DNA of 63,811 nucleotides, the filler included, from Guillardia theta CCMP2712 (taxonomy: Eukaryota > Protista > Cryptophyta), in NCBI RefSeq assembly GCF_000315625.1. It is 6 parts of 6 records of this genome, joined end to end, with 100 filler letters (N's around TTAATTAATTAA, not from the genome) between each part and the next. Parts side by side here need not be neighbours in the genome. Positions count along the whole stretch, not along the records: positions 45,447 to 62,105 come from NW_005434666.1; 5 more parts are not named here. One strand, written 5' to 3'. Shown in pieces: positions 19,772-62,105 of the stretch. The position numbers and the translations under genes are program-made. Position 1 is the first letter of the stretch; each line of letters begins with the position of its first letter. Under the pieces are notes generated by a model. That model ran no database searches, was not told the DNA's origin, and saw nothing but the letters and a program-made list of their open reading frames with translations.

Positions 19772-19953
19772 GATCTCGGTTGTGAAGGCAACCCGTATTG
19801 TAACGGTTAGTTTGATTTGAAGTTACAAGGGAGGATGGGGTGGTCTTTGTGGGCTCGCCTCAGAGTTGAAGTTTGAGGTTAAGTTCAAGTTTAAGTTCAA
19901 GTTCAAGTTCAAGTTCAAAGTTCAAAGTTAATCTAGTGATTAAGGTTTAGGGT

Positions 19954-22067
19954 CATTCTGGGGTCAAACCGCGTTGGTTTTCGTCCCATATCTTCAAGGG
20001 GGTGGTGCATGGGAAACTGGGGGTACACGGCGTGTGATTCGCGCAGGTTGAAATTCTGTACTGTTGAAATTCAAACCATATTCAAAACCGTGATTAAAAG
20101 TGATTTTGGAAGTTTAGCTTATCGTTTCTTGGTACTTTCTAAAATGTTTTAATTCTACACGCCTTCACCCACTACCCCAGCGCGTCTCCCCTCACCATTC
20201 TGCTCTCATGTCGCGAAGCTCTTCTCTTCCGATCCTTGTCTTCCGTGTTTGAGTTTTGTGCGAGCATGTGCCCAATTTGCAGTCACTCGCAGCAGGTGAG
20301 CCTCATCAATATTTCTCTTCGTCAAACCCGCTGTGCCGGTTGGTGAAAATGTTATTGTGCATAATCTGTTTCAAAGTCTGGATTGTGGAACGCATCCATG
20401 GAAGGGGACGAGTATACCACGAACACACACGAGCATGAAGAGACTCCAAAGTATTTTGTGAGAGGAGAAGGTGCAAATGAACTCGTTCCATCACACAGGT
20501 ATGGAGTTCTTCTGTGGATTGTTCTTTTGCTAATCGTTGTGAACAGGTAGCAAAAGCCTGGCGATGTTGAGAACTAGATTCTGCATGGTTACAGCTGAAG
20601 CGTATTACAAGATTCCAAGACCTTTATTCCATGAAGACCTTCATCTTCATGTACTGGATGGAATTTCATATTTATGAGAGATTCTTCACTGTGCCACATG
20701 ACTTGTTCACATCATGTTTGAACTTCTCCGCCTTTGAATGATGCATCTCTTGTTGCATGACTTAAAAACACTTTATGAAGATGCATAGTCTTGTATTTAT
20801 CCATGTCCACATGCTCAAAGCCTTGCCACTTTGTGACAAACAAGATTGAAACCTCTTGAAGACAGCAAACCCAACGGCACGGTGTTGGATGGCAGTGCAC
20901 CTACAGCATGTGCTTCCATTCTGTTGTGCGCGCACCATATGCTATTGTAGTTGTCATTATCATTGACTGGGAGTCCGTGTCAATTTGCTGGTAGTTCGAC
21001 ATCCTGAGATAAATGCTTCGAATGAATAATAAATGTCAAATCAGATATCATCTCCAACCTTGATTCTACTTTCATGTCAGTCTGATTGCAACGCACAATG
21101 GATTCTTGCATGCAAGCTTACAAGCTCGAGTCTTTATCCCTGATATGATCTGAGGCTTAATTGGACGTCAACAGCTCCGCCATTAGGGAAGCAAAGCAAA
21201 GTTCATGCATTTCACCAAATGTGCAAACATGCAAAGGACTTGAGTGAGGAGAGTTTGGAGAGGAGGGGAGATACTTCAACAAGAGCTTCGTGAGAGTCAA
21301 GTAATTGGCATTTTTCAAAGAATCAAATATCATCAAACTTTTTCTGAAGATGTGAAGCAACGACGTAACGAAGCGTACAGAATAGATGACGAGGAGGGAG
21401 TCAAGTGAGATGTTATTGTGCCTTAATGAATGTGGACTCGTCATGATCTTACAGATATTATTATTCAGTTGTCTTTTCAGATAAAGTACATTACTCTGAG
21501 AGCCCAGAATTCTTGAAGAGAAAATTGATGATACGATTGACTTGGTCGTCGGAAATGTAGGATGGCGAACTCATGCAGATTGATCCACTCCTGCAAGTTC
21601 ACCAAGTAAGAATTTATGCTGGATTCTTGATGCCAAGTGTACCTTGCGATCATCTTCTTACTCGGCAGTCCTTCACCTGTGCTCATGGTGGCAGCTCGCT
21701 GACCTTGCTGCTGTGCTCGCCCGGCGGCTCAGCATGACGGTGTGCGATTTGTCGATGGGAATGATGGGGAGTGTTTCCCCACCCTCATCGACAGGGTGGG
21801 TCATCAAAATTGTTTTAGATGGTACAAATCAGCAGTTATGAACCGTTACTCAGTACAACTGTTTGTACCACGGATTCGAATAAACAATTCATTGCCGTTA
21901 AAACAAATGGACACGCCAGTTCAAAATTTGAAGCACCCCTACCACTGATCTTACCGAGCAACACCCCTCAAAAACCATGGGGTACACTACCACCGGTATC
22001 CTATGAGAACAGCATACGCATTCCTCTTTTGCGTTAATAAAGACCAACGCGGTTTGACCCCAGAATG
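19954..22067 (+). mobile_element. 2.1-kb TIR DNA transposon with decayed KDZ-like transposase
   Basis: Perfect 25-bp inverted repeats CATTCTGGGGTCAAACCGCGTTGGT (19954-19978 / 22043-22067), with GT on both flanks. Internal frameshifted fragments read CAHHMLL..SLTG, ILACKL and SPNVQTCKGLE*GE../SLERR../YFNK (cf. KDZ CxH, YDIACKL, GLxDGExxERxW). Confidence 0.7.
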
Positions 22068-22216
22068 GTATCGGAAACAGTCACTGAGTCGAATGAGTTT
22101 TCGTTGAAGTCAAGTTTATTGAAGATCAAAGAGATTTTTAAAGTCAAAGTTAAGGCCTGACATATGCGGACGAACGATATGTTCGTTGATCAGCAAGAAG
22201 AGGAACTTATAGAGAC

Positions 22217-25200
22217 TGAAATTCCAGGATTACTGATTAGCGCTTTTAATGACCGGTACTTTTGACTGCTCATATACGGGTACTTGCCCTCGCACAGAAG
22301 CACCCTTTTACCCCCATTATCATCTGGTAATAGGGGGTGGGGTATTTGAATTGTCATGGGCGGTAACCTTCAAGACCACCCCGGGCCACCCCGGGCAGTT
22401 TCCCACCGCTCACGGTACCATATTCGTAAATCATGAATTGGGGTACCTTGTTTGATGGGGGTGGGCAGTCGGGTTCGAATTTTTGTACCAGAAATAATAT
22501 TTGAGTAATTACATAAAAGTTGTTTTTGAGAGATTTTAGGATGTATATATGGTACAAAAGCTCCTGGTAACCCCTCTGGTTGACCCGGATCCTCACCACC
22601 CCCTCCCTCCCCCCTTAAATCAAGTTGTGCTAGCCGTGTTCCCCTTCCTTCCCCGCCCTGCAACCATCATGCCCCTTCCTCCCTGCCGCGCCATCTCACG
22701 GTGACCATCCCTTCCCCTCCACGCCCCTCCAACCATCCGGCCTTCCCCTCTCCCCCCCTCCAACCATCCGGCCTTCCCCTCTCCGCCCCTCCAACCATCC
22801 GGCCTTCCTCTCCTCGCCCCTCCAACCATCCGGACTTCCCTTCCCCGCCACTCCAACCATCCCCTCCCCACCCCTCCAACCACCGGGGCCTTCCTTCTCG
22901 CACAGGCTCCCGACGACCATCCCTTCCCCTCCCCGCCCCTCCAACCATCCCACCTCCCAGTTGTTGTTCCTCCCGATGAGTTGCCGCCCAAGATGGGAGT
23001 ACCTCAATTGATCAAAATCCCTTTTTCTTCTCTCGGGATGTTATTCCAGCAAGACACTGGCGCTCCTCAACTTGTGCTTCGTGAGGTAGTTGAGAGTCGC
23101 AAACGCGTGACTTTCTAAAACCCAAGTATGGGAATCTCGTTCTTGGACGGTGACTCAAACAAACAACTCGGGCATGGTATAAGACAAAAAGTAATCGAGA
23201 GTCATGTAGATGTTTACATTCTTTACACCAAGGATATCTTCAGACAACTGCAAGCCAATGTCTTGAGTGGAGTCGTTCAACTTAGCAATACCGTTGAACT
23301 TCACTGGCAATTGGAATTTAAACAATGGTGGCTGCAGCTGAGAGGAAAACCAAAGACTCGTTGTCTTGCTGCCGCAGAAGAAGCTCCTTTGAGATTGAAT
23401 GTGGAGATACAGGATACGTGCAATGCTGTTTTGTTTCTATCTGAGATCATGCAAACTGATTGGGCCCAATAAAGGTAGTAGCCATTTCTAAGAACCTCTG
23501 TTGTGCAAATGTAATTGAACATACCCTTTCATGATTCACAACTGCGCTTCGCGGCCACGAGGGACTGGTAGTATGGGCCATTGACAATCAGCTTGTGAAG
23601 ACAGAAACTGCCGCTAACGAGGTTGGATGGCTGATTTTCAGATTTGCCAAGATCTAGCGTTATGGCTAGACTGGAAAAAATATCTGGACCCAAATAGTTC
23701 CTGTTAAGCCGGCTTACCAAGGCCATTTCAGCTTACAAGCTCATCCGCGCCAAAGATAGCAAATAAAACTTTTAGGTTAAATTTATGTATTCAAAATCAT
23801 TTGTAATTCTCTTGCTTTGCCGCGGTTCCACATTGAGGGCCAACTCACCATGCTCAGCAAGTTTCTGGGGACGACTTCATCAACGGCTCATGTTTTCTTT
23901 CCTCTCTTCGACGTTTTCCTGAAACAAAAATGGAAATGGTGACTTCAGTTGCCTTCTTAGGATTGCCAGTTGATAATGTCATTGTTGCACAGTCATAGCC
24001 TCCATTGATCGTGACAACAAGCCGTTGTGTTTCCCGTGAAGGTTGAAGATATCAATCCACTCTTCGACAAGTTGAAGAAGGCCGAGACCATGAGTCCCAC
24101 CATCCACTCTTACCTGTGATATTTTTGGCAAAGGAACAAAGCAGCCAGCCATGCTATCGTTTGCACGACAGAATCCTTGGTACTGCGATTTCGTTATACC
24201 GTTTGCTGTGAGGGCAACTGCTGCTTCCCGTGGGGTAGCCATCATTTGTCTGACCACAGGTTTCAGGCAGTTTTGAAGCTCCTTATTCGTGGCAAGTTCA
24301 TTCTTTAAGAAGAACGTAAGGCTATCGTATTTCGAAGTTTTGCACTTCGGAAGTTCTGCTTTCGCGGCCCCTCGACCGCTTCCTCTCCCCCGGCAGAGTC
24401 TTCCTCATTGTAGCGGTGTAATAGATCAGCAAAATGTCCCCATTTCACTCGAAAATTGGCCTTGTGTGATGCAAATTGCCGATCTACCTTCTTCGTGACC
24501 ACATCTAGAAGGTCCGAGGCTCATCAGTGTCACCCTGGATCTTCGTCAGAATCGCTGTTTTCACTTTTGGATCTTTGATAGCATCGTAACAAGCCGGGTT
24601 TGGTTCATCGGAGTCAGGGGAAATAATCGCTTCGCGCATGGCTTCATCCACATGATCACTAAAACCTCCATGCTCCTCAGACTCTAGTAAGATTCGAAGC
24701 AACAACTCAGGAGATCTACCTGCATCCCAGGTGTTACAAAGATTTGAATTTTACAAATGATCTCTTTTCAAACCTATGGCCTTCTCCTTGTTTATAGAGG
24801 AAGCCCTCTCGTCTTGCCAGAAACTCCCAGGTGAGTTGATTGAATTCATCATCATCCAGCCTGGCAGGGTGATGGTTTGCGACGTCTGCACGAACTTCCT
24901 TGCAAAAGGTGGGGATGACGGATTTGATATATTTGGTCCTGACATGATTAATCAATGTTTCAATGTTCAAACTATATTGGTAAATTTCAAGATCCCACTG
25001 ACATGTCTCTCAACCAGAGCCGTGGCAATTGGCCTCTAGGAAACATTTAAATCCCTGAAATAGGGATGGGTGGGGTGGGATCAGGGGAACAGGGGGGACT
25101 ACCCTACCCCCTATTTGTCAAAGCACTAGCAGAGAAGGACCCGGTGGCTTCATTCTTGTACCAAAACCAGAAACACAGTACACCATGAATTTGAATCAGG

Positions 25201-45446: not shown

Positions 45447-46071
45447 CTTCGTCCTTGCAGATCATACTTGACCAGTTCCAACCTCCGCACTCCCTCCCCT
45501 CCCTCGGTCACGGCCCGAGGGAGGGAGGGAGGGAGGGAGGGAGAGGACGAGGCAACCTTGACTTTCCCCGCGATCGTGAAGCCTTTAGCGAGTTCCTTGC
45601 CGAGGAAGAGCTTGACTTTGTTGTCCTGTGAGTCTTCAGCTTGATTGAGACAGACGAGAAGTGGCCACGAGGAAGTGGAACAGCGGCAGAGACTAGGAGA
45701 AGAGAAGGGAGGAAGATAGACTAGGAGAAGAGAAGGGAGGTATGAAGTTTATAGTGGGAGTAGGGAAAGGAAAAGGAGATTGGAGGATGTGGCAGAAGAA
45801 AGGATGAGGGATGACGGCGGGCAAGTGGGAAGGCGGAGGGAGGGAGGAGGAGGAATGTGGGTGGAGACGGGAAAAGAGGAAAGAACAACACCTGTAAGCA
45901 GTATGGTAGAACTCCGGATCCGATGAAATCTCCCACATCTATCAAGTATTGAGCCTCCTCCAACAGGCAAGGGCGAGGCGAGTGATGGAAACCTTCGCTG
46001 TCTTCCTCTCTCTTCTCATGCTCCTCCTGCTCCTCCTCTTCCCCGCGTCCGCTAGAGTGGATGTCCTCCAT
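45447..46071 (-). CDS. 5' part of a multi-exon hypothetical gene
   Basis: Exon-like pieces WEISSDPEFYHTAY and DNKVKLFLGKELAKGFTIAGKVK bounded by AG/GT. Confidence 0.35.
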
Positions 46072-47397
46072 TCTTCTCTTTACCGCCGCCGACTAGTCCA
46101 TCCTGCTTCACCTCTTGTCAGCTCATCGGGTCTGAATCCAAGAAGCAGGCAACTGAGAAGGGAAATCAAGGCATGAGGTCTGCTCTAACTAACGTCAAAG
46201 TACTGATCTTCCCAAGTTACCATTGATTGACACTGCCATTGTTGCATTGCATGTCTACTCCTTGCTTCTCTCTTCTTCATTCTCATCTTGTCCTTCTTGT
46301 GCAGTCTTTGTCTTGTCTTGTCTTGTCTTGTCTTGTCTTGTCTTGTCTTGTCTTGTCTTGTCTTGTCTTGTCTTGTCTTGGCCTACTCTGTGCTACTCTA
46401 CCCTAACCTGTGTTTGTGCCGCAACACTCCATGGTCCGTCTGTAACTTTGTACCCCAGCTCGCCTCAAGGAATCAATTAGTGAACAAACCAAGGACAGCA
46501 ACTTAAACATAGACAGGTATTTACTCTTTGAACCGTTTGGCAGCAGCTCGGTCGTAGGATGTAGGGCTGGAGACAACTACTTTAGCTAATTTTATTTTTA
46601 TTTGTTTAGCTTACCTTGTTTTTCTTTAAGACTTCTCGTTCAGGGGAATCGTCTTTTCCCCCACTACCCCCCATCACTACCCCCACCCTTAGATTGAAGT
46701 CAAAAGTACCCCTACCCATACTACCCCACCCCACAGACATCTATTTCTGCAACTTGCCCGAATAGTTCCGATTTCCACCCCCTTGTACCAGCCTACCCCT
46801 ACCCCTCTCACTATCTACCCCCTTTCTGACACACGTTGCAGGTCAACCACACGGGTGATCAGCTGACTTTATAGCAGGTAGGGGTAGAGACGGTACCATG
46901 GAATAAAGACTGACAAAACCGTAAATTTGGGGGTGGTGTGGTATGGTAGGGGGTAGGGTAGTACCTTTTGATCATCACATTCCTTGAGGTTTGAAGCGTT
47001 TCGTTTGAAATGTGAGGAAGAGTGGGCGAAATGGGGGTGGGAGGTGAAGAAAAGGGGTAGCATTTATTTATGGGTGGGTGATGGTAGTCAAACAAAAGGG
47101 CATATCCTTTGAAAAATCTGATTTAGGTAGGTAGGGTACCAAGATATGGGGGTGTAGATGAGCACAAAGGGGTGTGCTTGGTAATGGGGTGGTAAAGTAG
47201 TACATCTGATTGAGGGTGTAGCATGGGATGCAGGAAATGAGAGGAGAGTAGGAGGACAGGAGGAGGAGAGGAGAAGAGAGACGAGGAAACTCTCAGACTG
47301 TGAGAGACGTGTCAACGTGCTTGTAGGCGACGATTGTTGAACTTGAGCAGTGAAGAACCTGGCTAGTACGAGCGCAAGAAGCGACGTCATTAGGATC

Positions 47398-48987
47398 ATG
47401 AAGTTTGGTAAGCGGATTCATTCAGTGGCACTCCAGCATCAAGAGTACTCGAGCTACTTTCTGGATTACAAGGCCTTGAAAAGGCTGCTGAAGCCAATCA
47501 CCCATCGCAATGATCGGAACGAGGCGCTGGACAACCTGGACAGTCACGATTCGTTCGACTTCCCAGTGTTCGCTCGCTCGCAGTCGGAGATCTCGGATGC
47601 TGAAGAGCGCTTCGTGCTGGCGCTGGAGAGCGAGATCGCCAAGGTCGAGTCATTCTTCAGGACGAAGGTGGCTGAGATGACTCCGACCTTCCGCAAGCTG
47701 TGCCGCCGGGTGACGAGGGTGGAAGAGAGGGACAGGAGTTTGCAGGAATGTACCAACCTGATGCAGCTGAAGCAGCAGCTGGCAGGGCTGCCCGAGGCCT
47801 GTCTGATTGAGGAGCTGCTCAAGTTCTCGTCCGACGTTGACCTTCTCAGGGCCTTCGTCATGACTAACGCCCAGGCCATCGTTAAGATATGCAAGAAGCA
47901 CGACAAGAACTCCACGGTCGCCATCCGAGACCATTACATCGGCGTTCTGCACCGCTGCACCTTCTATTCTTCTAGGGAGTTCGGCGTCTTGATCGCTGAC
48001 ATCGAAGTCCTGGCGCTGCAGCTCATCGAGCGACTGACCGGCAACAAGCCTTCCCCCGACGTGTTCCAATGCCCTGTCTGCATGCACGTCTTGAACAACC
48101 CTCTCGTGCTCTCCTGTGGCCATCGGTTCTGCAACTCATGCGTATCAGCAGCGGCTTACTTCGGGCAGCACTCATGCCCTGTCTGCCGCAAGGAGTGCGT
48201 GCTCAACGATGACAACATCAAGATCGAGACGCTCCTGGGGCGTTTCTTACAGAACCACTTCGAGTTGTCGCCACGCAAGTCCGGCTCCTTCGACTTGGAG
48301 CAGCTCGGCGAGTCGCAGGCGTCTGCTACCCGATCGGGCACCTGCGTCCTGCAGTCACCCTGTGAGTTCTGCCGGAAGAAACGAGACGAGCGCCTTCCGT
48401 CGCGCCTGTCGCAGATCGCGGAGGAGAATGAGGCGCGGGGGATGTCAAGTACGAGCGGTCAGGACCATGCGTCTTCACACCCACGACCCTTGTCGGGGAG
48501 CAGGTTCAGAGCATGCTCCGAGATATTCTCCTCTCAGACGATCCTCTCGGACTCTCGGGCCACCAGGTACATCACTGCCCTTCTCCTCTACGTCGTCTCG
48601 TTGGCTGCTGACCTAGCGACGGGGATGGTGGCGCTGCTGGGCGAGCATCTCGACCCTCGCCTGCAAGACGTGCTGGCTCAGCTCTGCTCTGTGGGCCAGC
48701 GCAACGAGACGGCGAGGCGCCTGAGAAGTCTCGTGAAGTACCTCTGCATCGCCTCGCTCGTGCTGGTGCTGGTGCTGGGCGCGGCAGCCTGGTACGGTGA
48801 CGTGGGTTCTTGGTGGACAGTGGAGCAGACAAACGAGACCTGCGCGTCGAGCGAGGCCTCCAGGGGGAAGGAGCGGCAGGGAGAGAGCTCAGTGAACCTC
48901 CGCCATGTGCTGGAGCTGCAGGAGAAGAGGACCAAGTCCCTTCATCGAGCGCTAGACAAGATGTTGATGCATTCGACTAAGAAATAA
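47398..48987 (+). CDS. SPX domain + C3HC4 RING E3 ligase (NLA/BAH1-like) with C-terminal hydrophobic segments, intronless
   Basis: MKFGKRI..FLDYKALKRLLK and NAQAIVKICKKHDK (SPX); CPVC..LSCGHRFCNSC..CPVCR (RING); YLCIASLVLVLVLGAAAWY (TM). Confidence 0.9.
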   Translation: MKFGKRIHSVALQHQEYSSYFLDYKALKRLLKPITHRNDRNEALDNLDSHDSFDFPVFARSQSEISDAEERFVLALESEIAKVESFFRTKVAEMTPTFRKLCRRVTRVEERDRSLQECTNLMQLKQQLAGLPEACLIEELLKFSSDVDLLRAFVMTNAQAIVKICKKHDKNSTVAIRDHYIGVLHRCTFYSSREFGVLIADIEVLALQLIERLTGNKPSPDVFQCPVCMHVLNNPLVLSCGHRFCNSCVSAAAYFGQHSCPVCRKECVLNDDNIKIETLLGRFLQNHFELSPRKSGSFDLEQLGESQASATRSGTCVLQSPCEFCRKKRDERLPSRLSQIAEENEARGMSSTSGQDHASSHPRPLSGSRFRACSEIFSSQTILSDSRATRYITALLLYVVSLAADLATGMVALLGEHLDPRLQDVLAQLCSVGQRNETARRLRSLVKYLCIASLVLVLVLGAAAWYGDVGSWWTVEQTNETCASSEASRGKERQGESSVNLRHVLELQEKRTKSLHRALDKMLMHSTKK

Positions 48988-49050
48988 CAAACATGTGCGT
49001 TTGCCAGTCGTTGGTTGGAGTGTTTCTCCTCTTGCCTTTTACCTTTCACT

Positions 49051-49116
<66 letters not shown>

Positions 49117-49364
49117 CCCCCTCTGCCCCCACCTCCCAACTTCTTTCCAGCATCTCTGCATTTGTAGACTACTGCCTCCATGCAGCAAGATGGAGAGCCG
49201 GCGCTCGGGCGGCTGCGGCAGGTTAAGAGGCGTCGGGTTGACTTTACAAGGAGCAAGTGACAAGAATGGACAGACATAGCTCGAGGATGGAGAAGGTAGT
49301 GGAACACGAGAAGGTGGGAGAGATGGCGAGGAGGAGCATACGGATAGCTACGAGCTGCTCCCTC

Positions 49365-51120
49365 TCAAGGCTTCTCGCTGACGGATGTCTGCATGCTGTC
49401 CAGCTGAGAGGCAAAGAACCTGTCTCTGAGAGGACATGACATCAGTCCCTCCTCCTCCTCCCCACCTCACTCTCACTGCATCGGTCGCATGAACGGAAAG
49501 AGTAGAGAGCCGACCAGGCCGGAGCCTGCCGAGACCGATCTCCAGCTGAAGGTCAGCTACGACAGGAGACTGCTGGAGTCCACCTGATGGCGAAGTAAAC
49601 TCTTCCCAGCTCTGAGCTGCTGGGATCCTTGCTGGGCTCATACCCATCCCACAAGACCGCCAGGCGCTCTTCTCCCCGGATCAGATGCCCCTGCCTGCTG
49701 CAGCCTAAGCGGACTCAGAGGGAGGGAGGAGGTTACAGCGTCGAGTAGGCGACCTGAACGAGATTAGTGCTGAGGAAAGGAGAGGAGAAGACAAGGCAAG
49801 GCAAGGCAAGGCAAGGCAAGGCAAGACAAGAGCAGGAGAGGAGAGGAGAGGAGAGGAGAGGAGAGGAGAGGAGAGGAGAGGAGAGGAGAGGAGAGGAGAG
49901 GAGAGGAGAGGAGAGGAGAGGAGAGGAGAGGAGAGGAGAGTATCGATGAGGATGGGCGCGTAGCACCTGCGACAGTCTCGCGCTAGGTGAGAGCTGATTG
50001 AAGAAGCAGTCGGCATCGCGAGCCCGGTGCTTAAGCGGCACATCCACGTCCTCGTACACTTGCCTTGTGCTCGTCAGGTCGTGCTGAGGGGGTCGCGGCT
50101 CACCTGCAAGGGTTTCTGACCCACATGAGACCTCCGTAGCATCTGGCAGATACAAGCGTTAGAGGAGGAGGAGGAGAGAGAGGAGGAGGAGAGGGAGAGG
50201 GGAGGAAAGGAAGGATGAACGGTGCGATAAAGAAGAGAGGGAGGAGAAGGAGGAGGAGGAGGAGGAGAGGAGGAGGAGAGAGGGAGGGAGGGAGTGGAGC
50301 AGCAGCAGCAGGCATAAGAGGAGCGTTCTCTGACTTCGCATATGTCACCACAGGACTCTCTTTCTCCTCGTTCTTCTTCGCAGGCGACAAGACGCCAGCC
50401 CATGCCACCTGCAGCCGCGTGACTTTCTCGCCCTGCCCCTCCATCCCTCACGTTGTCCATCACCCTCCAGCGCGTCAGTAGCGCTCGTGCCCTCTCATAC
50501 GCTTCTCGTCCTCGTCCCACACACGTCGAGCGACTGATGACCGTCCATCCCTTCGGGCTTGACATGCAAGCATCCTGCCGGATTCCCGGTTGAGAGGAGG
50601 AGGAGGAGGAGGAGGAGGAGGAGGAGGAGGAGGAGGAGGAGGAGGAGGAGGAGGAGAGGAGAGGGAGAGGAGAGGGAGAGGAGAGGAGAGGACAGGAGAG
50701 GACAGGAGAGGGAGAGGGAGAGGGAGAGGGAGAGGAGAGGAGAGGAGTCAACGAGGTTGAGATCAAGACGAATCGAAGAGGGGAAGGAGAAGGTAAGGAT
50801 GGTAATGGAGTGGGTGAGGAGGAGGAGTTTACATTGAAACTTTGGCTCCTCGTGACGCCGGGTTGCTCATGGTTGAAGGCTGGAGGGGCTCTCAGACGTC
50901 GAGCTCGCCCCTCCCTCCCTCACCTCTGCCCGACAGCGAGGAAGCAAACATCCCCAGCTCCTCCCCCGTCTGCTGCTGCGTCAGCGCGTGCAGCTGAGGA
51001 GCTCAGGCTCACAGGTTTCGTCAAGGAGAAGACGGTGAGGAGAGCAGCCGACGCTCCTCCCGCCCCGTCCAGCCGCCCCGCCATGGCCACCGCCACCCAC
51101 ACCCACCAGGAAAGCCGCAT
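49365..51120 (-). CDS. DUF1990-family protein, multi-exon, with signal-peptide-like start
   Basis: Exons [61 protein letters not shown] and PFMRPMQ/DRFF match DUF1990. Confidence 0.8.
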
Positions 51121-53350
51121 CGCCTTGCCTCAGGAGCGATGCAATGCCAGGAACAAAGGGAGGGGGAGGCGTAGGGGGGGGAGGAGGGAGGGGGAGGGGG
51201 AGGTGGGGCTCGGGGAGGGAGGAGGAGGAGGAGGAGGAGGAGAGGAGGGACATCAGTTCGTGCAGGCAGCGGAGGAGAACGACTTCGTCGCTCTACGGCA
51301 TTTGATGTCCTCGCACGTCGACGTCAATGTCAAGGACAGGAGCGGCAGGACCGCCATGCACGCGGCGGCCGCGGCAGGGAACGTGCAGGTCGTGAAGTTT
51401 CTGCTCAAGGAGAGTGCGTCGTTGGAGGAGCGAGACGGGTACGGGAAGACGGCGGTAGAGGAGGCCGAGCGATGCAGGAGGCAGGAGGTGGCGGAGCTGC
51501 TGCGGGATCACAAGTTTCAGTCGTCATGCGATGCCTCTGATGACGCGAACATCGTGGAGATAGGACATGGAGGACGACACAAGTCGTGGAGGATGCGGAC
51601 AGCGAGGAGGAAGGCAGGCGGGGAGGGGAAGACGGAGAAGATGCCGACGACTAGGAGGGAGGATTCCCAGTACCTGACCACCCTCGAGTCACATCCCAGC
51701 AAGTGGGTTCCTCAGGAGCAGGACGAGCAGCAGCAGCAGCAGCAGCAGCAGCGAGCAGCGAGGAGAGAAGCGAAGGAGGTAGATCAGAGCATGTTGCAAG
51801 GATGTGGCTGTAACTCCATGGGTGAGCTCGGGCTCGGGCACCGGAGCCCCTTCGTGTTCGGCGCGAAGACCGTCCTCCTCCCTCGCCTGCTCCTCGGGCG
51901 AGTCACTCCGACCATGGCGGCGGCGGGGGAGAGCTTCAGCATCGTGAGCTGCGCGGAGGAGGAGACCATGTCGTGCGGGTCCAACCTGATGGGGCGACTG
52001 GGCCTCGGGGAGGAGGAGGAGAGCAAGGCCGTCTTGTACTTCACTCGCATCCCTGGGCTCAGCAGGGTCGCGCTGCTGAGCCTCTCCTGCGGCTTCAAGC
52101 ACGTGGTATGCTGCACGCGAGAGGCCGAGCAGCGAGTCCTGTCGTGGGGGGGAAACGAGGAGGGGCAGCTCGGGTTGGGGTTTGTGAGCGACAGGCCTTG
52201 CAAGGAGCCGCAGGAGGTGGAGGGGCTGAGGGGAGCAGGAGTGACGGTCGTCTCCTGTGGTAGACTTCACTCGCTCCTGCTGAGCTCCTTGTGGGGCCTC
52301 GTCGCCTTCGGGAGCAACTCGCACGGTCAGCTGGGGATAGGAGGGAGCGACAGCTGCTGCAGCTCCCCCACCCCCCTCGAGCTGCCGGACGGGCCCCCGT
52401 CCTCGGTCTCCTGCGGCTCCCATCACACTGCAGTGGTCATGGCCGACGGCTCCATCCTCTCCTTCGGAAACAACTCCAACGGTCAGCTCGGCGTCGGCAC
52501 TCACGACAGCCCCGTCCTCTCGCCTCGCCGCATGCTCCTCCCTCCTCTCTCCCGCGCGCTCTCCTGCTCCTGCGGAGGTCTGCACTCGGTGGTGGTGGCG
52601 GAGAGCGAGGAGAGGACGAGAACTGTCTTCGCGTGCGGAGCAGGCAAGTTGCTGCACCTGCTTTCTCCCTTTGACTGGCGCGGCAGGCGGGTGCGGACAG
52701 CAGGGGACGAGCGGGGCGCAGGAGAACAGCTTCGTGCCTCATGAGGTCGCGACGCTGAGGGGGAAGCGAGTCGTGTCGGTTACATGCGGGATGTTCCACA
52801 CGTTAGGTGAGAGGGAGGGAGGGAGGGAGGGAGAGGAGAGGAGAGGTGAGGTGAGGAGGGGAGAGGGAGAGGAGAGGAGAGGAGAGGAGAGGAGAGGAGA
52901 GGAGAGGATGGAAAGGGAAGAGGGAGGGAGCGCAAGGATGCATGAGTCTGACAAGCTGAGGCAGCGCTGGTGGTGGAGGATGGGCCTCGAACGGTACTTT
53001 ACAGCTGGGGCATGGATCAGTTTGGCGGGGGGAGGAGGACGGGCTCGCATCTCAACAGCTCGCACGCGGAGGATGGAGTGCCGCGGGTTGTGATGCGCGA
53101 GGAGGAGGAAGGAGTCGCCATCACCAGTATCGCAAGCAGCGCGAGCAGCAACCACTCGCTCCTCCTCCTCCGTCGGCGCCTCTCGTGGGAGCGGGAGCGT
53201 ATCCTGTGGATCGGCTTCCTCAAGGGCGACCCTCGTTCGTGCTTGATCGCTCGCTTGCCTTGCGACGGCTCCTCCTCAACCTCCTCCTCCACCACCTCCT
53301 TCTCCTCTCGCATTCTCAGGACAATCCTGGACTACTCTGCCCTCCTATGA
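51083..53350 (+). CDS. Ankyrin-repeat + RCC1-repeat protein (start uncertain)
   Basis: [29 protein letters not shown] (ankyrin); multiple G.N..GQLG.G / VSCG..H RCC1 blades; last exon ends TGA at 53350. Confidence 0.85.
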
Positions 53351-53589
53351 CCAGCGTGAGGGGAACTATCAGGCTCGATAAGTTCCTCATATTCATTCAG
53401 TTGCCTCCAGGCGCCAAACATTCTTGTCATCCTTCTGCTCTTGTCGTCAGTCCTCCTCCTCCTTCCTCCTTCATCTGGCTCACCTGTAGAAGATGCTTCA
53501 TGGATGGTGTTTCTGGTGCTTTGCCTTGGTTCACGCGCACCTGCTGTCTGCTCAGAGTCCTCCTCCTCCTCCTCCTCCTCCTCCTCCTC

Positions 53590-53689
53590 NNNNNNNNNNN
53601 NNNNNNNNNNNNNNNNNNNNNNNNNNNNNNNNNNNNNNNNNNNNNNNNNNNNNNNNNNNNNNNNNNNNNNNNNNNNNNNNNNNNNNNNN
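53590..53689. other. Scaffold gap (100 N, no linker)
   Basis: Plain N run, distinct from the inter-contig spacers. Confidence 0.95.
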
Positions 53690-54244
53690 GGGGGTACTCG
53701 GGTAGGCAAACCGGGGGGTGGTAAGACCTTTATAAGGAAAGCGAGGCGAGCCCGTGCCCAAAGCCGCTGACCGCCAAGTTACTAGTTAGCTGGCCCGGCC
53801 CGGACGTTCACGGTTGATGCACTGCACACGAACGTAACACTGCCGGGAAGGATCCGATGATCTGAGCCTGAGTGAAACACAAGCATCCAGACATGCTGAG
53901 AGGACCTTAGCAAGACGGCTAGGAAGGCCGGCCGCGGCTCTTCCGACGGTCAAACGTACCGTACTAGGCTAACTTGATTGTCGCAGTAGCCGCGGCGGCC
54001 CCCCCCCCCCCCGTCGCACAGTAAGTAACTCGGAACTTTCCATACGGTACGGTAGCCTTGCTAGCCCAGGCTACGGTACGGTACCCGCCGGGCCGGGCCG
54101 GGCCGCCTTCACTGATTGAAGCGGCCCGGCAGGGCCCCGCACGTGCAGTTTCAAAACGTTTAAATATTTCAGTCAAATATTGAAATCTTGGCACTGTATT
54201 TGGGCATCGATCAGGAAGGATTTCCCCACCAAAAGTAGCATGGT

Positions 54245-55137
54245 ATGAGGGAAACAGGAATGACAAGTGAGGAGAGGAGAGAAGAGAAGGGGATGAAGAG
54301 GAAGAATGCTCATCGGAGCGAAGAGCAAGAAGATGCAGAAGTGGATCAAGATGCCTTGGAGAGGCTTGAAAGGATGCAAAGAGAGCGAATCATGGAGATG
54401 TTCGGTTATGATGCGGAAGAAGAGAACGCGATCCTGAGAGCCAAGTCAGAGTCAAAGAGCACCAAGGTTCAGCCGAAGCAAGCACAGCCCCTCAGCAGCA
54501 AGAAGCCGAAGGTTCAGAGCTCCAGCAGTGTGAGGGTGTCGGGGCCCTCTGAGCCGGTTCGAAATGAGTTGCCCAAGTTCGATGGAAAGGGGTCACGTCC
54601 TTCACGTCCTGTGAAGGTCAGCAGGGAGAGCGAGGCGACGACCTCGAGGCCGAAGGCGTCAGAGAATTTCATGTCCTCGAAAGTCTCAAAAGTACATGGG
54701 GGCGAGGAGAAGGCTTCAAGCGGCGTGATCAAAGGAAGGACGCTGAAGCGGAAGACCGGGGATGATGAGTTCATATCCACTGCCAGGATTGTAGAGGAGC
54801 TAGGTGCTTCGATGTTTGCAGGCAGGAAGAGAAGAGCGTGGGAAGCGAAGAGGCTGAAGGAGATGGGAGCCAAGGGGCCCAAGAACCAGAAAGTCCCCTA
54901 CGACATTCTGATGCGGCGGAAGAAGAAGATGGCGTGAGTGAAGGAGAGAGGGAGCCCTTGACGCTGACATGCTGCAGGAAACTGGACGAGCGGCAAGAGA
55001 AGATGGAGGTCGAGTCAGGGATGAAGCTCAAGGCCACGAAGAAGAAGAAGAAGGGCAAGACCATCCACTCCCTCAACACTGTTGGTGTCATGACAGTGAA
55101 GCCGTTAGAGCAGAAAAAACGAGGAAGAGGGAGATAG
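54245..55137 (+). CDS. Faf1/DUF4602 (C1orf131)-like small-subunit biogenesis factor, 2 exons
   Basis: ELGASMFAGRKRRAWEAKRLKEMGAKGPKNQKVPYDILM; intron ~54934-54978. Confidence 0.65.
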
Positions 55138-55202
55138 CGCCAGACCTGTTCTTTCATATCAAAACTTTACTGACAGATATTACAAGCTTTCAGTCGCACT
55201 TG

Positions 55203-58200
55203 CTAGAACAGCGCCGAGATCCTCCGGTTCCCTGCCACTGAAAGTCGCGTGTCCTCGTTCTGCCCCGTAGCCGGGGGGTTCCGCTGCTTCGCCTCCACGT
55301 TCCACTTGGCGACGAAGGGATGACGGAGGAGGCGGCGAGCAGAAGGTCGTTCTTGCTGCAGAAAACGTCAGCTCCTCCTCCTCCTCTTCCTTCCCTGCTC
55401 TCTCACCGGGTCTCTGCGGAAGCACAGGGCACAGAAGTCTTGGCACTCTTGGGAGAGGGTGGGAGGGAGAACAGGAGGCGCGACAGTCCGCACGATGTGC
55501 CAGAAGAGAGCAGCAACGTTGGAGAACTGATTGGCGAAGGGAGGCTTCGACGTGCACATCTCTACGACGCAGCAGCCGAGAGACCATCTGCAGTATCATG
55601 AGGAGGAAGATGAAGAAGAAGAAGAAGATGAAGCAGAAGAATGGGACGAGGAAGAGTGGCAGAGAACGAGAGGGGGAGAGGGGAAAGGGAGAGATTGAAG
55701 AGGATCGCATACAAGTCAGACTGTCTCCCGATGTGACTCTGCTTGATAACCTCAGGAGCCATGAAGAAAGGTGTTCCCTTCATAGACATCTGCGCTGCCT
55801 CCCCTGCCATCCAATCACTCCTCCTCCTCCCTCCTCCCTCCTCACCATTGATGGAGGACAGGTTCCGTGAGGCTCCGAAGTCAGCGACTTTCACGTTCCC
55901 GTCGGCGTCAAGCAGCACGTTAGCGCACTTCACGTCGCGATGGAGGATGCAGTGCTTGTGAAGGTAGTCCAGCCCGAGCAGGATCTGCCGCGTGTAGGAT
56001 CGAACCTACTTGAGCTCAGCGATCTCCTCCCTCTCCTCCCTCTCCTCCCCCTCACCACTTGCTCGTTCAGCGCCCCGAAGGTCGCGATGACGGAGGCGAT
56101 GGATCCTCCCGCGCAGTACTCGACGAGCACGGAGATTCCTTTGTCTCGCTGCACCCCATAGTAGGCGACGATGTTGGGGTGCCGCAGCTGCTGCAGCAGT
56201 TTGATCTCAGCCTCCAGCTCAGCGATCGCCGACTCTCCGGCCTTAGAGCAGTCCACCTCCTTCACTGCAAGCAGCTCCCCCGTCGCCTCGTTCAACCCCA
56301 GGAATACCTGCTTCCTCGTCAGCCCTCCCCCCGCCCACCTCCTCCTCCTCCCCTCCGCCTGTGCTCCCTTCCTCACCTGCCCAAAGGATCCCGCGCCCAG
56401 CAGCTCTCCCTTCTTGAACTTGATGTTGCTCTTCGCCATGGCCTTGAGCTCGTCCTGTCGCTCCTCCATCTCCTTCATCACCTCCCTCCGAACCTCTGCG
56501 TGCTCCTCAGGGGTGTAGTAGTTGTCGCCAAGATAGTCCCAGTAGTGCACCGACAGCCGTTTCTCCTCCACCTCCTGCGTCTCTTGCTCTTGGACGGTGA
56601 CAGAGGAGGAGAGGGAGGAGGAGGCGGAGGAGGAGGCCGCGCTCTCCTCCTCCGCTACCACCGGCAGCGTGCTCGGACGAGGCTTCGGAGGCTTCATGGG
56701 GCTCATGAATTCAACTGACGGGGCGCCAAGGGCCGCGAGCTCAGAGGGTGAGGGAGCTTGAGGAGGAGGGGCAGAGGAGGGAAGCGCCGGAGGATCTTCA
56801 GGGTCCTGTAGCATCCTGTCGGAGGAGAGGTCCAGGTCCAAGTTGGAGCAGATGCCTTCCACATCCTGAGACTCCGAGAGCTGATGGAAGGACAGCTCGC
56901 TCCTCTCGCTCTTCTCCGGCGACTTGAAGCTGCTCGAGTTGACCTCCTCCATCATCGAAATCTCCTTCCTCTCCTCCTGCTTGCTGCTTTCGCTCTGCCG
57001 AGGTGAGAGATCGTCGGCCGAGTTCACGCGCATGTGCCTGGAGGTAGCGGACTGCCCATGGTTCTCCTTGTCCGAGAAGGAGGAGGAGGATTCTTTGGCT
57101 GGGAACACAAGAGACTTCGGCATCGTCTTGGTCAACGGGCTCCGTTGCGGCACCGTGGCGAAATTAGCTTTCCTCTGAGCCGAATTGGGGAGTCGAGGAG
57201 AGGCTTTCACGGCCATGCAGGGGCTCGAGGCAGCCGGGCAAGCAGCAGAGGAATGAGATGAAGCTCGAGCAGCCTTGAGGCGCTGACGCTCCTCCTCTCT
57301 CCTCAGCTTCTCCTCGTCTCGCTCTCGTTCCTCCCTCTCCCTCTCCTCATCCATGATCTCCAGGAACCTCCTCCCAAGCAGCAGGAACTGCTCCCCCTCG
57401 TTCTCCTCCCACTCGTTCACCATCTTCATCAGCTTCTCTGTCACCTTCGGCAGCTCCTTGCTCACCATGTTTCTCCTCCGCTCCTCCTGTTGTCGCACTC
57501 TGAATGAATTCGCTCCCCTGTCCAGCAGCCTCGACGGGTCAGTCGCCGCGTTCCGCAGCTCCGCCGCCTCCTTCAGGATCGCCTCTCGTCGTTCGATCTG
57601 CTTCAGCACTGCCTGACGTTTCGACAGCCGCTCGTTGAGCCGCTCTTCCTCTCCCTTGAGCCTCTTGAGCTCCTGAGCACAAGCGTCAGGCCCGCCAGAC
57701 CTTCCCCGTCCATCTCACCTCGACCGAAGGCCCCCTCCTCTCCTCTGCCTGATCCACTGCCTCCTCCTTCAGCTCTGCCTTGATGGCCGCCAGCTTCTCG
57801 CTGGCCTCCTCGCACAACTCAGGAAGCATTCGATTCAGCTTCACTCGGAGCTGAGAGCCTCAAGTCAAAACTCTCGCAAGGGCAACGGCAACGATTCACC
57901 TCATCGATCGACCTCTCGTTCTTCGCGATCATTTGCGCATAGCAGCTGTCGGAGGGATGCGAGACGTAGGCCTCTTGCTCTGCTGGAGCTGTCCTGGTGA
58001 CCTCCAGGAGCTGTTTGATCTCGTCCTGCTGCGCATTCAGCTGACCCTCCATTTGACCCCTGACTTGTTGCAGCATGTCCAGCCTCGTGCAGGTTCTCTT
58101 GACCAAGTTTCCTGTCTCCTTCAGGGACTCTGTGTTCAAATCCATCTGCATGTCCCAAAGTGAGGCAGACAGAAGCATTCACCCTACTTTACCTGACACA

Positions 58201-58889
58201 TCTCGTCTACGTCTTTCCAGTCCTTGTCCCCTGGCGAGTTTCCAACCAGCTCGATGAGTTCTCTGATGCCAGCGAGCGATCTCTGCAGCTCTTCTATTCT
58301 CTGCTCCCTCAGTTGTTGCTTCTCAAACACGATTTGACGAATGTCTTCCTCGTGCTGTGGAGAAAGATTCATTTCGATGTTTGCCTACCAAAATGTTACT
58401 GCAATGAACACATGTATGTTCAAGCGTCACCGTTGTCTGCTCCTCCTGTTCTTGGCTCAGAATACAAAACTCATCACAGTAAAGGAACTTCAATTCCTCC
58501 AGCAGATTTGTCATGACCACATATCTCTCGTCTCGAAGCGTTTCTGTTCGGGATAAGATTGCCTCCAAAGTCTCCATCTTCTCTTTCAGCGCGACTTGCT
58601 GCCCTTGCCCATGTGTTGAATCATTCTGAGCTTGTTCCCCTAGCTGGTTCTTCATGGAGCTCAGTCTGACCTCCAACAGGCGAATCTTCAGATTCATCGT
58701 TGCTTTCTCCTCCTTCGCCTCATTGACCTTGGCTTGCAGGATCCTCTCGAATTCGTTTGAAATTTCCTTCTGAACCGCACTGCGATCATCCTCGGCTATT
58801 CCGATCTCATTCCAAAGACTTTCCAACGAGATGAAGTGATCTCTGGCCTTCTGAGCAAGATCTTCTGCGATCACATCCATCGACTTCAT
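55203..58889 (-). CDS. MAP65/Ase1/PRC1 microtubule-bundling domain fused to an NPK1/MEKK-like MAP3K kinase domain
   Basis: N-terminal LESLWNEIG coiled coil; conserved motif DPSRLLDRG...QEERRR..VSKELPK..EKL..V.EWEE.EG.QFL..G; kinase FKKGELLGAGSFGQV, LAVKEV, LRHPNIV, HRDVKCANVL, VADFGAS, MKGTPFFMAPEV, RPSARRLLRHPF; stop at 55203. Confidence 0.88.
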
Positions 58890-59631
58890 CGCTGCTGCGC
58901 CGCCTATTCGCTCCTGAGTGGACAGCGGGTTGAAAGAGCTCCTACTGTAGATGCGAGAGGCGCAAGACGACTGGTGGCTGCGAGTGAGAGCTTACGTTCT
59001 TCTCACTGTGACACTGGCAAGCGCTCTCCTCCCCTCTCTCTCCTCAGCTTCTCCTCCTCCCCTCCCTCTTGGCCAGCATGCCGCGATGCTAGGCGTGTAG
59101 ATTTGAAATGTTGAGTAAAGCTTTCCAACCGACACACATATGAGGGGTGGGGTGAATATTGTCGAGGGTGGGTACTATTGGTACCAGTACAGGGGGACTT
59201 GGGGTGATGTGATGAGTTTGAAAGCAAACAGAAGGGTAGGGTAGGGTAGGGTAGGGTAGGGTAGGGTAGTTTGAATAGGGGTGGGGTCAGAGAAGTATTG
59301 GAAATGGTGGACTGCAGAGCAATGATGCAGAGAGGAGAGGAGAGCAGAGCAGAGCAGAGCAGAGCAGAGTGGGTATGGGGGTATGGGAGAGAATTGAGGA
59401 GATAGATGAAAACATTATTCAGAGACGGTATAGCTGATGACAGACGAGTGCACACCACGAGACGAGCAACTTTGAAGGCGCAAATGGCTCAATGAAGGAA
59501 AGTCAGAGCAAGAGAATGAGAATGGAGGGAGGTGGGTGGAGAGAGAGGATGTAAGATTAATTTCTTTCCTGCAGAGCTGAAAAAACCTTCCTCTGTTTGA
59601 TTCTCTGCCCTTCTCTTGATCCTCCATCGCC

Positions 59632-62105
<2,474 letters not shown>

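Follow-up and report, generated by a model that had tools for sequence, protein, structure and literature searches.

The window analyzed here, a stretch of 63,811 nucleotides (filler included) from Guillardia theta CCMP2712, harbors a gene that encodes a MAP65/Ase1/PRC1-type microtubule cross-linker fused to a C-terminal MAP3K. It was confirmed that this gene is real, that it is transcribed as a single spliced RNA and that it is conserved. The most probable reading, to which we assign a likelihood of about 60%, is that the fusion ties a MAP3K directly to the overlaps of antiparallel microtubules and that the APC/C removes the protein.

The fusion gene lies on the minus strand, runs from the ATG at 58889 to the stop codon at 55203 and comprises 10 exons encoding 1053 aa (CDS 55203..58889, translated from the model based on RNA contigs X1 and X2). 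These two boundaries agree exactly with the RNA-supported model, whose stop codon ends at 55203 and whose start codon lies at 58889. The whole gene was covered without mismatches by X1 record 1 (3403 nt) and X2 record 2 (2985 nt), which stem from independent runs of different years and contain an identical spliced contig. The spliced contigs of both runs span 59000-55149, and removal of nine GT..AG introns results in the 1053-aa ORF. The transcript thus extends from at least 55149 to past 59000, with a 5' UTR continuing upstream of 59000, and additional shorter isoforms or molecules that are not full length remain compatible with these contigs. A further run of raw reads (X14) yielded 10 reads only, mostly over repeats, and was uninformative on strand and on the 5' and 3' ends. 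A joint at 56356/56614 with high depth was rejected as an intron; it is a low-complexity chimera of a kind attracted by the GGA repeats in the gene.

The following exons were assigned, all on the minus strand. Exon 1 (58431..58889, aa 1-153) encodes the dimerisation hairpin at the N-terminus together with the first part of the MAP65 rod and matches positions 2-152 of the Pfam MAP65_ASE1 profile. The rod continues in exon 2 (58193..58384, aa 154-217; RNA joint 58383/58430, collinear with the relatives), exon 3 (57900..58145, aa 218-299) and exon 4 (57719..57850, aa 300-343), the latter two being placed by RNA joints and by alignment to relatives. Exon 5 (56377..57672, aa 344-775) contains the fusion junction, as it runs from the spectrin-fold domain through the entire linker and the pre-kinase motif into kinase subdomain I; it is present as an unbroken piece (56375-57671) in the X1 and X2 contigs. 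Exon 6 (56056..56307, aa 776-859), exon 7 (55846..56005) and exon 9 (55407..55587) were defined by RNA joints, and exon 8 (55713..55803, 91 nt) was deduced from the positions in the X1 record and the GT..AG rule. Exon 10 (55149..55355, RNA joints) completes the CDS with the stop codon at 55203-55205 and adds a 3' UTR of at least 54 nt.

The initial annotation placed the MAP65 motif in the same uninterrupted reading frame as kinase subdomain I, so that the fusion does not depend on a splice model. Indeed, the minus-strand ORF 55930..57609 (559 aa) is present and holds both domains in the same frame, with matches to PF03999 MAP65_ASE1 (E 6e-18, 65.3 bits, profile 344-451 of 477) and to PF00069 Pkinase (E 7.9e-14, residues 434-520). 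The end of MAP65, the linker and kinase subdomain I hence occupy one exon and one ORF. The MAP65 N-terminus was found in ORF 58323..58889, corresponding to exon 1 (PF03999 E 1.3e-7, 31.1 bits, profile 2-152); the scores of both ORFs exceed the PF03999 gathering cut-off of 26.9 bits. Kinase subdomains VIb-VIII are located in ORF 55562..55933 (Pkinase E 2.6e-12). Transcripts ending between the domains had been named as an observation that would speak against a fusion; one spliced RNA in the X1 and X2 contigs carries both domains.

At least five relatives from metagenomes, all of them divergent, show the same architecture, including P0015 (1126 aa), P0016 (1107 aa), P0018 (1198 aa) and L001. In P0018 the protein is encoded by a single 1198-aa ORF in genomic DNA (63.6-kb contig), in one relative the region from MAP65 through kinase subdomain VIII forms a single ORF, and one relative is identical in 12 contigs from at least six assemblies. 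The close relative L002 (93.5% identical) shows 95.5% identity in exons and 86.0% in introns, and the sole indel in the CDS is an in-frame change of 6 nt. The ratios of synonymous to nonsynonymous differences between the two were 35:26 for MAP65, 21:13 for the linker and 16:1 for the kinase, which indicates purifying selection on the fusion gene, linker included. Outside this family no MAP65-MAP3K fusion was found in an exhaustive HMMER search; matches of that search comprising several stretches were tandem kinases and were rejected as distant fusions. A description of such a fusion was not found in the searchable literature, no named orthologue in Eimeria or other annotated taxa was among the protein matches, in a protein atlas only generic kinase and LRR clusters were matched, and exact look-ups of two window ORFs gave no match.

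Proteins of the MAP65/Ase1/PRC1 family homodimerise and cross-link antiparallel microtubules. The N-terminal 477 aa of the fusion protein match PF03999 over almost the entire profile, and the scores of full-length relatives reach 100-122 bits across profile positions 2-456 of 477 (E 1.9e-30 for 6-456). The microtubule-binding domain of the PRC1-type spectrin fold was assigned to aa 344-477 (57271..57672, minus strand) by an AF2 model and Foldseek. The modelled region (aa 344-490) reached a pLDDT of 88, and its top 8 matches in the PDB were all PRC1 (3nrx, 3nry, 5kmg, 4l6y, 4l3i), with an E-value of 6.8e-4 for 3nrx and TM scores of 0.61/0.68 for 5kmg. In a phmmer search of the PDB, PRC1 alone appeared among the matches, and in structural alignments human PRC1 shares ~20-27% sequence identity with the module. 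For the N-terminus a homodimer with an interface at residues 2-65 was predicted with an ipSAE of 0.63, compared to 0.01 for the best control, a score that may have been carried over from PRC1 structures already known to the model. In the calibration of the ipSAE mark, 21 of 30 solved homodimers and none of 23 monomers passed; the predicted contacts agreed by at least 93% between runs, with a partner pLDDT of at least 80. The module is complete, with N-terminal dimerisation hairpin, helical rod and spectrin-fold domain, and the fusion protein would be expected to bind microtubules. It resembles MAP65/Ase1/PRC1 in having a PRC1-like hairpin, a spectrin-fold domain and a disordered tail thereafter, but its tail is longer and ends in a MAP3K. 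To our knowledge, no member of the family with an enzyme domain has been described.

The linker (aa 478-719, 56545..57270, minus strand) is predicted to be disordered, as judged from its composition and site counts. It is ~240 aa long, aligns poorly among the relatives and is Ser/Pro-rich as annotated initially (22% Ser, 11% Pro); the many SP sites ascribed to it do not exceed chance, since 7 S/T-P sites were observed compared to 6.4 ± 2.1 in composition shuffles. VPxxSP and SSP sites beside the spectrin domain are partially conserved among relatives. In layout the linker matches the C-terminal regulatory tail of MAP65 in extended form, occupying the place where MAP65/PRC1 proteins have their phospho-regulated C-terminal tail. 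Exactly one KEN tripeptide (aa 545-547, 57061..57069, minus strand) occurs per linker in all six lineages of the family, while the linker is otherwise variable; the chance occurrence is 2-6% per linker. We therefore regard the conserved KEN as a candidate APC/C degron, a KEN tripeptide alone being a weak degron predictor.

The linker is followed by a conserved pre-kinase segment (aa 720-757, 56431..56544), an invariant alignment block consisting of WDYLGDNYYTPEE and subsequent helices that reach pLDDT values of 75-89 in the AF2 model of P0016. The protein kinase domain (aa 758-1018, 55311..56430), which is split by introns 5-9, was assigned by its catalytic motifs and its 74-85% identity to the kinases of the fusion family. 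All catalytic motifs are present (GAGSFGQV, AVK, HRDVKCAN, DFG and GTPFFMAPEV with its APE), so that the catalytic core is complete and probably competent. The Pfam Pkinase profile matched P0016 with an E-value of 1.8e-65 and was covered from 2-263 of 263 positions in the relatives. The C-terminal tail (aa 1019-1053, 55206..55310; all three segments on the minus strand) was delimited by alignment to relatives and has a conserved RRISALF end; the window protein, P0016, P0015 and P0005 share the terminus R(R)[TI]SALF-COOH.

The kinase had been annotated as an NPK1-like MAP3K. Its best solved match was MAP3K2 (9p6a, 222 bits), compared to at most 177 bits for STE20-type chains, and its named best matches were MAPKKKs. 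By sequence it groups as a STE11/MEKK-type MAP3K, nearer to MAP3Ks than to STE20/MAP4K, and this part of the assignment stands; a specific kinship to NPK1/ANP is not supported. In a maximum likelihood tree of 71 kinases, from which named Cdc15, Cdc7(SIN) and MAP3K-epsilon members were left out, the fusion kinases formed their own clade (100/99) with cryptophyte kinases as sister group (98/86), and the STE20-type outgroup was set apart at 100/99. No Cdc15, Cdc7(SIN) or MAP3K-epsilon member was among the named top matches listed for the kinase. The ANP/NPK1 clade, including Hordeum NPK1-like and Selaginella MAPKKK2, was supported at 100/100 and had chlorophyte kinases as its sister (98/92). A tree constrained to unite the fusion kinases with ANP, the grouping taking in the chlorophyte sister group of ANP, was 35.6 lnL units worse (AU p = 0.053) and is thus disfavoured, though not formally rejected. 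Membership of the NPK1/ANP subfamily is disfavoured by the tree placement together with the reversed domain order and the DxYYTxEE motif. The kinase occupies aa 758-1018 of 1053 with only 35 residues after it, whereas in ANP-like matches it starts at residue 11-101; NPK1/ANP proteins carry a C-terminal kinesin-binding region, which the fusion protein does not have. The pre-kinase motif DxYYTxEE is common to 22 other protist kinases and was missing in the ANP-like, MAPKKK3 and MEKK2/3 proteins examined. Kinases with DxYYTxE[ED], for instance from Cryptomonas paramaecium (P0155), Norrisiella (P0138) and many environmental samples, share 43-50% kinase identity with the fusion, and the cryptophyte ones make up its sister group in the tree, but none has a MAP65 module and all are uncharacterised. 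MEKK2/MEKK3 (MAP3K2/3) also have a C-terminal kinase, MAP3K2 being ~44-48% identical, but contain an N-terminal PB1 domain and form a separate clade (100/99). Since the nearest kinases are uncharacterised protist kinases, orthology gives no reason to assume a role in cytokinesis.

Plant MAP65 is phosphorylated by the terminal MAPK of the NACK-PQR pathway. In animals, Plk1 docks on phosphorylated PRC1 at the midzone. Plant cytokinesis is under the control of a MAPK cascade acting via ANP MAPKKKs (PMC2951530). Like the NACK-PQR pathway (NACK1/HINKEL, NPK1/ANP, MKK6, MPK4, MAP65), in which a MEKK-type MAP3K and MAP65 act at antiparallel overlaps in plant cytokinesis (PMC2951530), the fusion combines both components, and the motifs GTPxxMAPEV and DFGAS are common to both kinases. 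The plant MAP3K and MAP65 are, however, separate and linked via a kinesin and two further kinases. Alpha-Aurora is reported to dock on MAP65-3 at the midzone in Arabidopsis (PMC11074315). In this arrangement and in the Plk1-PRC1 pair the overlap cross-linker serves as a platform concentrating a kinase at the midzone, but the association is non-covalent, regulated and involves Polo or Aurora kinases, whereas the fusion is covalent and involves a MAP3K.

We infer localization, substrates, mode of activation and degradation of the fusion protein as follows. The MAP65 module would most likely place the kinase on antiparallel overlaps, for example at the spindle midzone or its equivalent, where the kinase domains might activate one another in trans as dimers crowd together. 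The overlaps would in this way become the very sites at which the kinase emits a MAPK-type signal or directly phosphorylates overlap proteins, its own tail among them, and the APC/C might remove the protein via the KEN box at mitotic exit. It is a reasonable inference that the fusion may replace kinesin-mediated kinase delivery. A midzone cross-linker and a MAP3K, which cooperate in plant cytokinesis via several intermediaries, are here joined covalently, providing independent evolutionary evidence for a functional MAP3K-MAP65 link outside plants and pointing to a eukaryotic lineage with an unusual division toolkit. The fusion also offers a simple system to ask if a kinase cascade can be turned on directly by overlapping microtubules, and a template for engineered midzone-targeted kinases. 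A stricter version, in which midzone geometry itself is the input of a MAPK cascade, replaces the NACK step and is reset by KEN and the APC/C in each cycle, seems unlikely to us; if true, the gene would be a natural Rosetta-stone fusion, showing that the coupling of MAP3K and MAP65 predates the plant phragmoplast and extends beyond it.

Control of MAP65/PRC1 by phosphorylation is exerted by external CDK, MAPK and Aurora kinases. The fused kinase might instead tune its own Ser-rich tail or neighbouring MAP65 molecules in cis or trans and head no MAPK cascade, making the protein a bundler that regulates itself. The ~240-aa tail with its 22% Ser and purifying selection (21:13), its location where the phospho-regulated tail of MAP65/PRC1 sits and the partly conserved VPxxSP and SSP sites by the spectrin domain agree with this, but MAP3Ks of the MEKK type, of which the kinase is a typical example, have MAP2K activation loops as their known substrates, and we consider such self-regulation somewhat unlikely. 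A function outside division, with MAP65 targeting the MAP3K to interphase bundles (cortical, flagellar-root or other) for stress or morphogenesis signalling, appears distinctly less probable. Plant MAP65 paralogues do bundle interphase cortical microtubules as well, and the fusion and cryptophyte clade joins fungal SSK2-type stress MAP3Ks weakly (86/83); yet the deep nodes of the 71-kinase tree are not resolved, and the conserved KEN and the PRC1-like module fit a cell-cycle-regulated midzone protein better.

That the two domains belong to separate genes, joined by mis-assembly or read-through or with transcripts ending between them, is very improbable and has largely been refuted. From contigs it does not follow that all transcript molecules extend over the full length, and the low-complexity GGA repeats attract chimeric joints such as 56356/56614. 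Against an artefact stand the location of the junction within one exon and one ORF, the recovery of the same spliced contig in two runs of different years, the frame kept in L002 and the at least five divergent relatives with the same domain order, one of them a 1198-aa genomic ORF.

With respect to the neighbourhood of the fusion gene, no Rfam matches were obtained in the analyzed 16.6-kb piece of the window or in seven related loci, and a Blastocystis-type TGTTTGTT motif was absent. As described initially, the fusion gene has a head-to-head neighbour, which begins ~740 bases away on the opposite strand. It encodes LRR_6 repeats of a generic kind and, after them, a stretch resembling coiled coil, so that this neighbour, initially labelled LRRC45-like, is at most a candidate for that assignment. 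Within the divergent intergenic region between the two genes (58890..59631), a (TAGGG)n repeat occupies positions 59237-59266.

A single conserved, expressed polypeptide in which a PRC1-like cross-linker module is joined to an intact MEKK-type kinase is encoded on the minus strand of the window at 55203-58889. The piece in which the gene lies (45447-62105) is 57% G+C and contains a single 100-N gap at 53590-53689. As the initial annotation had proposed, both domains are found in one frame of the minus-strand ORF 55930..57609 (559 aa), with Pfam matches to MAP65_ASE1 (E 6e-18, profile positions 344-451 of 477) and Pkinase (E 7.9e-14). Of the two flanking ORFs, the upstream one (58323..58889) corresponds to the N-terminal third of MAP65_ASE1 and the downstream one (55562..55933) to kinase subdomains VIb-VIII.

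None of the sequencing runs listed as containing this stretch is recorded as RNA. Two runs with different organism labels, X1 (2018) and X2 (2014), each hold one contig (3403 nt and 2985 nt, respectively) in which all introns are spliced out and which has 0 mismatches to the window, that of X1 extending from beyond 59000 to 55149. Exon borders were derived from the contig joints and the GT..AG rule, giving ten exons, nine introns of 42-125 nt and a 1053-aa coding sequence that begins with the ATG at 58889 and whose TAG stop ends at 55203. Exon 5 (56377-57672) alone holds the last part of the MAP65 module, the whole linker, the pre-kinase segment and the kinase glycine loop, and the spliced contigs span it; thus transcripts ending between the domains were not encountered, as judged from assembled contigs, with which shorter isoforms are compatible. 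The X2 contig extends unspliced for a few bases into intron 8 (55695-55712), which may reflect intron retention or merely the contig end. The joined 1053-aa model was used for alignment, local BLAST against the collected proteins and trees, while database searches were run with exon or ORF sequences and the relatives' proteins as queries.

Residues 1-477 constitute a full MAP65/Ase1/PRC1 module. For the exon-1 product (aa 1-153), structure prediction gave a symmetric homodimer with interface residues 2-65 (pLDDT at least 80, runs agreeing in at least 93% of contacts). Its score of 0.63, compared with 0.01 for the best control, passes a mark that 21 of 30 solved homodimers but none of 23 monomers attained, a pass possibly due to the predictor's memory of PRC1. 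Modelling of aa 344-490 with AF2 (pLDDT 88) gave a fold whose eight best PDB matches were all the spectrin-fold microtubule-binding domain of PRC1, including the microtubule-bound 5kmg. When the PDB was searched by sequence with the MAP65 part of the relatives, PRC1 was the only match. Its E-values were weak (about 0.004); the PRC1 assignment is carried by the fold match and Pfam.

The kinase (aa 758-1018) retains every catalytic motif and is directly preceded in sequence by helices, ahead of which stands the invariant block WDYLGDNYYTxEE (together aa 720-757). Among solved structures MAP3K2 matches it best (222 bits), ahead of STE20-type kinases at no more than 177 bits, and its named sequence matches (44-53% identity) are MAPKKKs of several kinds: green-algal proteins, Selaginella 'MAPKKK2', barley 'NPK1-like', plant MAPKKK3 and animal MAP3K2/3. 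In a maximum-likelihood tree of 71 kinase domains, Cdc15, SIN-Cdc7 and MAP3K-epsilon kinases not being among them, the fusion kinases form one clade (100/99) with two cryptophyte kinases as sister (98/86). The ANP/NPK1 clade (100/100) has chlorophyte and environmental kinases as sister (98/92), and the deep backbone is without resolution. A tree constrained to unite the fusion kinases with the ANP and chlorophyte groups was 35.6 lnL units worse (AU p = 0.053), so that this grouping is disfavoured, short of formal rejection. ANP membership is further argued against by the reversed domain order, by the lack of a long C-terminal regulatory region and by the pre-kinase motif DxYYTxE[ED], which none of the examined ANP-like, MAPKKK3, MEKK2/3 and Myrmecia proteins carries; it also occurs in 22 other protist kinases. 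The protein belongs to the MAP65 family and to the MEKK-type MAP3Ks. Of the 'NPK1-like MAP3K' first proposed, the MAP3K assignment stands and the kinship with NPK1 is not supported; by the sequence tests run, in a comparison without the three kinase groups named, the kinase appears to be no ANP orthologue. At the C-terminus stands a conserved RRxSALF; in the form R(R)[TI]SALF this extreme end is kept across the family (window 55206-55226 and the relatives' proteins P0015, P0016 and P0005) and looks like a phospho-acceptor site of basophilic, PKA/Aurora-type kinases.

The linker (aa 478-719) is 22% Ser and 11% Pro. Many SP sites had been noted in it; the seven S/T-P sites present are no more than its composition predicts (6.4 +/- 2.1). 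In this otherwise poorly alignable stretch a KEN tripeptide occurs once and only once in each family member, mostly in the form (D/G)KEN, with a chance of 2-6% per linker, and this is a candidate APC/C degron. Ase1 has a known APC/C degron.

Word-index searches recovered full-length metagenomic relatives with both Pfam domains, namely P0015 (1126 aa), P0016 (1107 aa) and P0017/P0018 (1141/1198 aa), as well as the ORF pair of the fusion at locus L001 and several fragments. On the 63.6-kb contig L003 a single ORF runs from MAP65 through kinase subdomain VIII. The P0015 gene is intron-poor, with N-terminal exons just upstream, and 12 contigs spread over at least six assemblies encode its product in identical form. 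The window kinase is 74-85% identical to those of these relatives, with no other kinase compared exceeding 52%. A contig 93.5% identical to the window (L002) keeps all exon-intron boundaries, with exons 95.5% and introns 86.0% identical and a single coding indel of 6 nt. Synonymous to nonsynonymous changes number 35:26 in MAP65, 21:13 in the linker and 16:1 in the kinase; these counts and the kept boundaries therefore indicate purifying selection on all three as one reading frame. Metagenome assembly ERZ24794615 holds two family members, L001 and L004, with kinases about 70% identical; these come from two related organisms or else are a pair of paralogues.

The combination of MAP65 with a MEKK-type MAP3K is a new domain architecture. 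Among the matches listed by an exhaustive HMMER search with P0016 against 1.84 billion cluster representatives, no protein outside the family carried both domains, and no description of such a fusion was found in the literature searched. Multi-stretch matches, considered as distant fusions, proved to be tandem kinases.

In its proposed working the protein resembles the plant NACK-PQR module (PMC2951530) and kinase docking on PRC1 or MAP65-3 (PMC11074315). In contrast to both, its kinase link is covalent, and by the tests described its kinase, unlike that of NACK-PQR, is not orthologous to ANP. Judging by its family, the MAP65 part would dimerise and bind antiparallel overlaps, and the kinase would therefore be concentrated there. 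There it may either activate a MAP2K or act by phosphorylation on overlap proteins, its own tail included; trans-activation could follow dense packing on overlaps, and the KEN box would allow APC/C-dependent removal. Alternatively, the protein might be a purely self-regulating bundler, or a signalling protein on non-mitotic microtubule bundles. That the fusion is an artefact is very unlikely, being opposed by the junction within a single ORF, the spliced contigs of two runs and the conserved fusion in relatives.

Tail-to-tail with the fusion gene lies an FSAF1-domain gene (PF15375, E 5.9e-10; 54245-54937, plus strand). In the distant relatives L004 (7533-8791, minus strand), L005, L007 and L008 the FSAF1 gene is also the immediate neighbour, in head-to-head orientation, which suggests a conserved adjacency with one gene inverted. 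The divergent gene (59632-62000, plus strand) encodes LRR_6 repeats (E 7e-17) and then coiled-coil-like sequence; microsatellite-encoded runs, such as (EQ)n at about 60340-60480, interrupt it. This architecture is compatible with the LRRC45-like identity initially given, which stays a candidate one, the clusters matched being generic LRR clusters only. Pentanucleotide microsatellites of (GGAGA)n type are frequent in introns and intergenic DNA across the piece, and a (TAGGG)n run (59237-59266) lies in the promoter region common to the two divergent genes. As ORFs the microsatellites would encode SPLLS or EERRG repeats, and they draw very deep, chimeric RNA contigs, e.g. at 56541-56671. Elsewhere on the plus strand, a single 545-aa ORF (47350-48987) pairs SPX and RING with a hydrophobic C-terminal part, recalling plant NLA-type E3 ligases in the SPX and RING pairing, and a gene for ankyrin repeats followed by an RCC1-like beta-propeller (50810-53100; RCC1 E 3.1e-40) continues as far as the 100-N gap. 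In L004, close to its fusion gene, a gene at 19119-23035 and beyond has a called product of 6981 aa with Calx-beta, discoidin, Kelch, EPTP, fn2 and laminin-G-type domains; the product has the look of a giant adhesion-type protein of the extracellular kind, and it may help to place the lineage.
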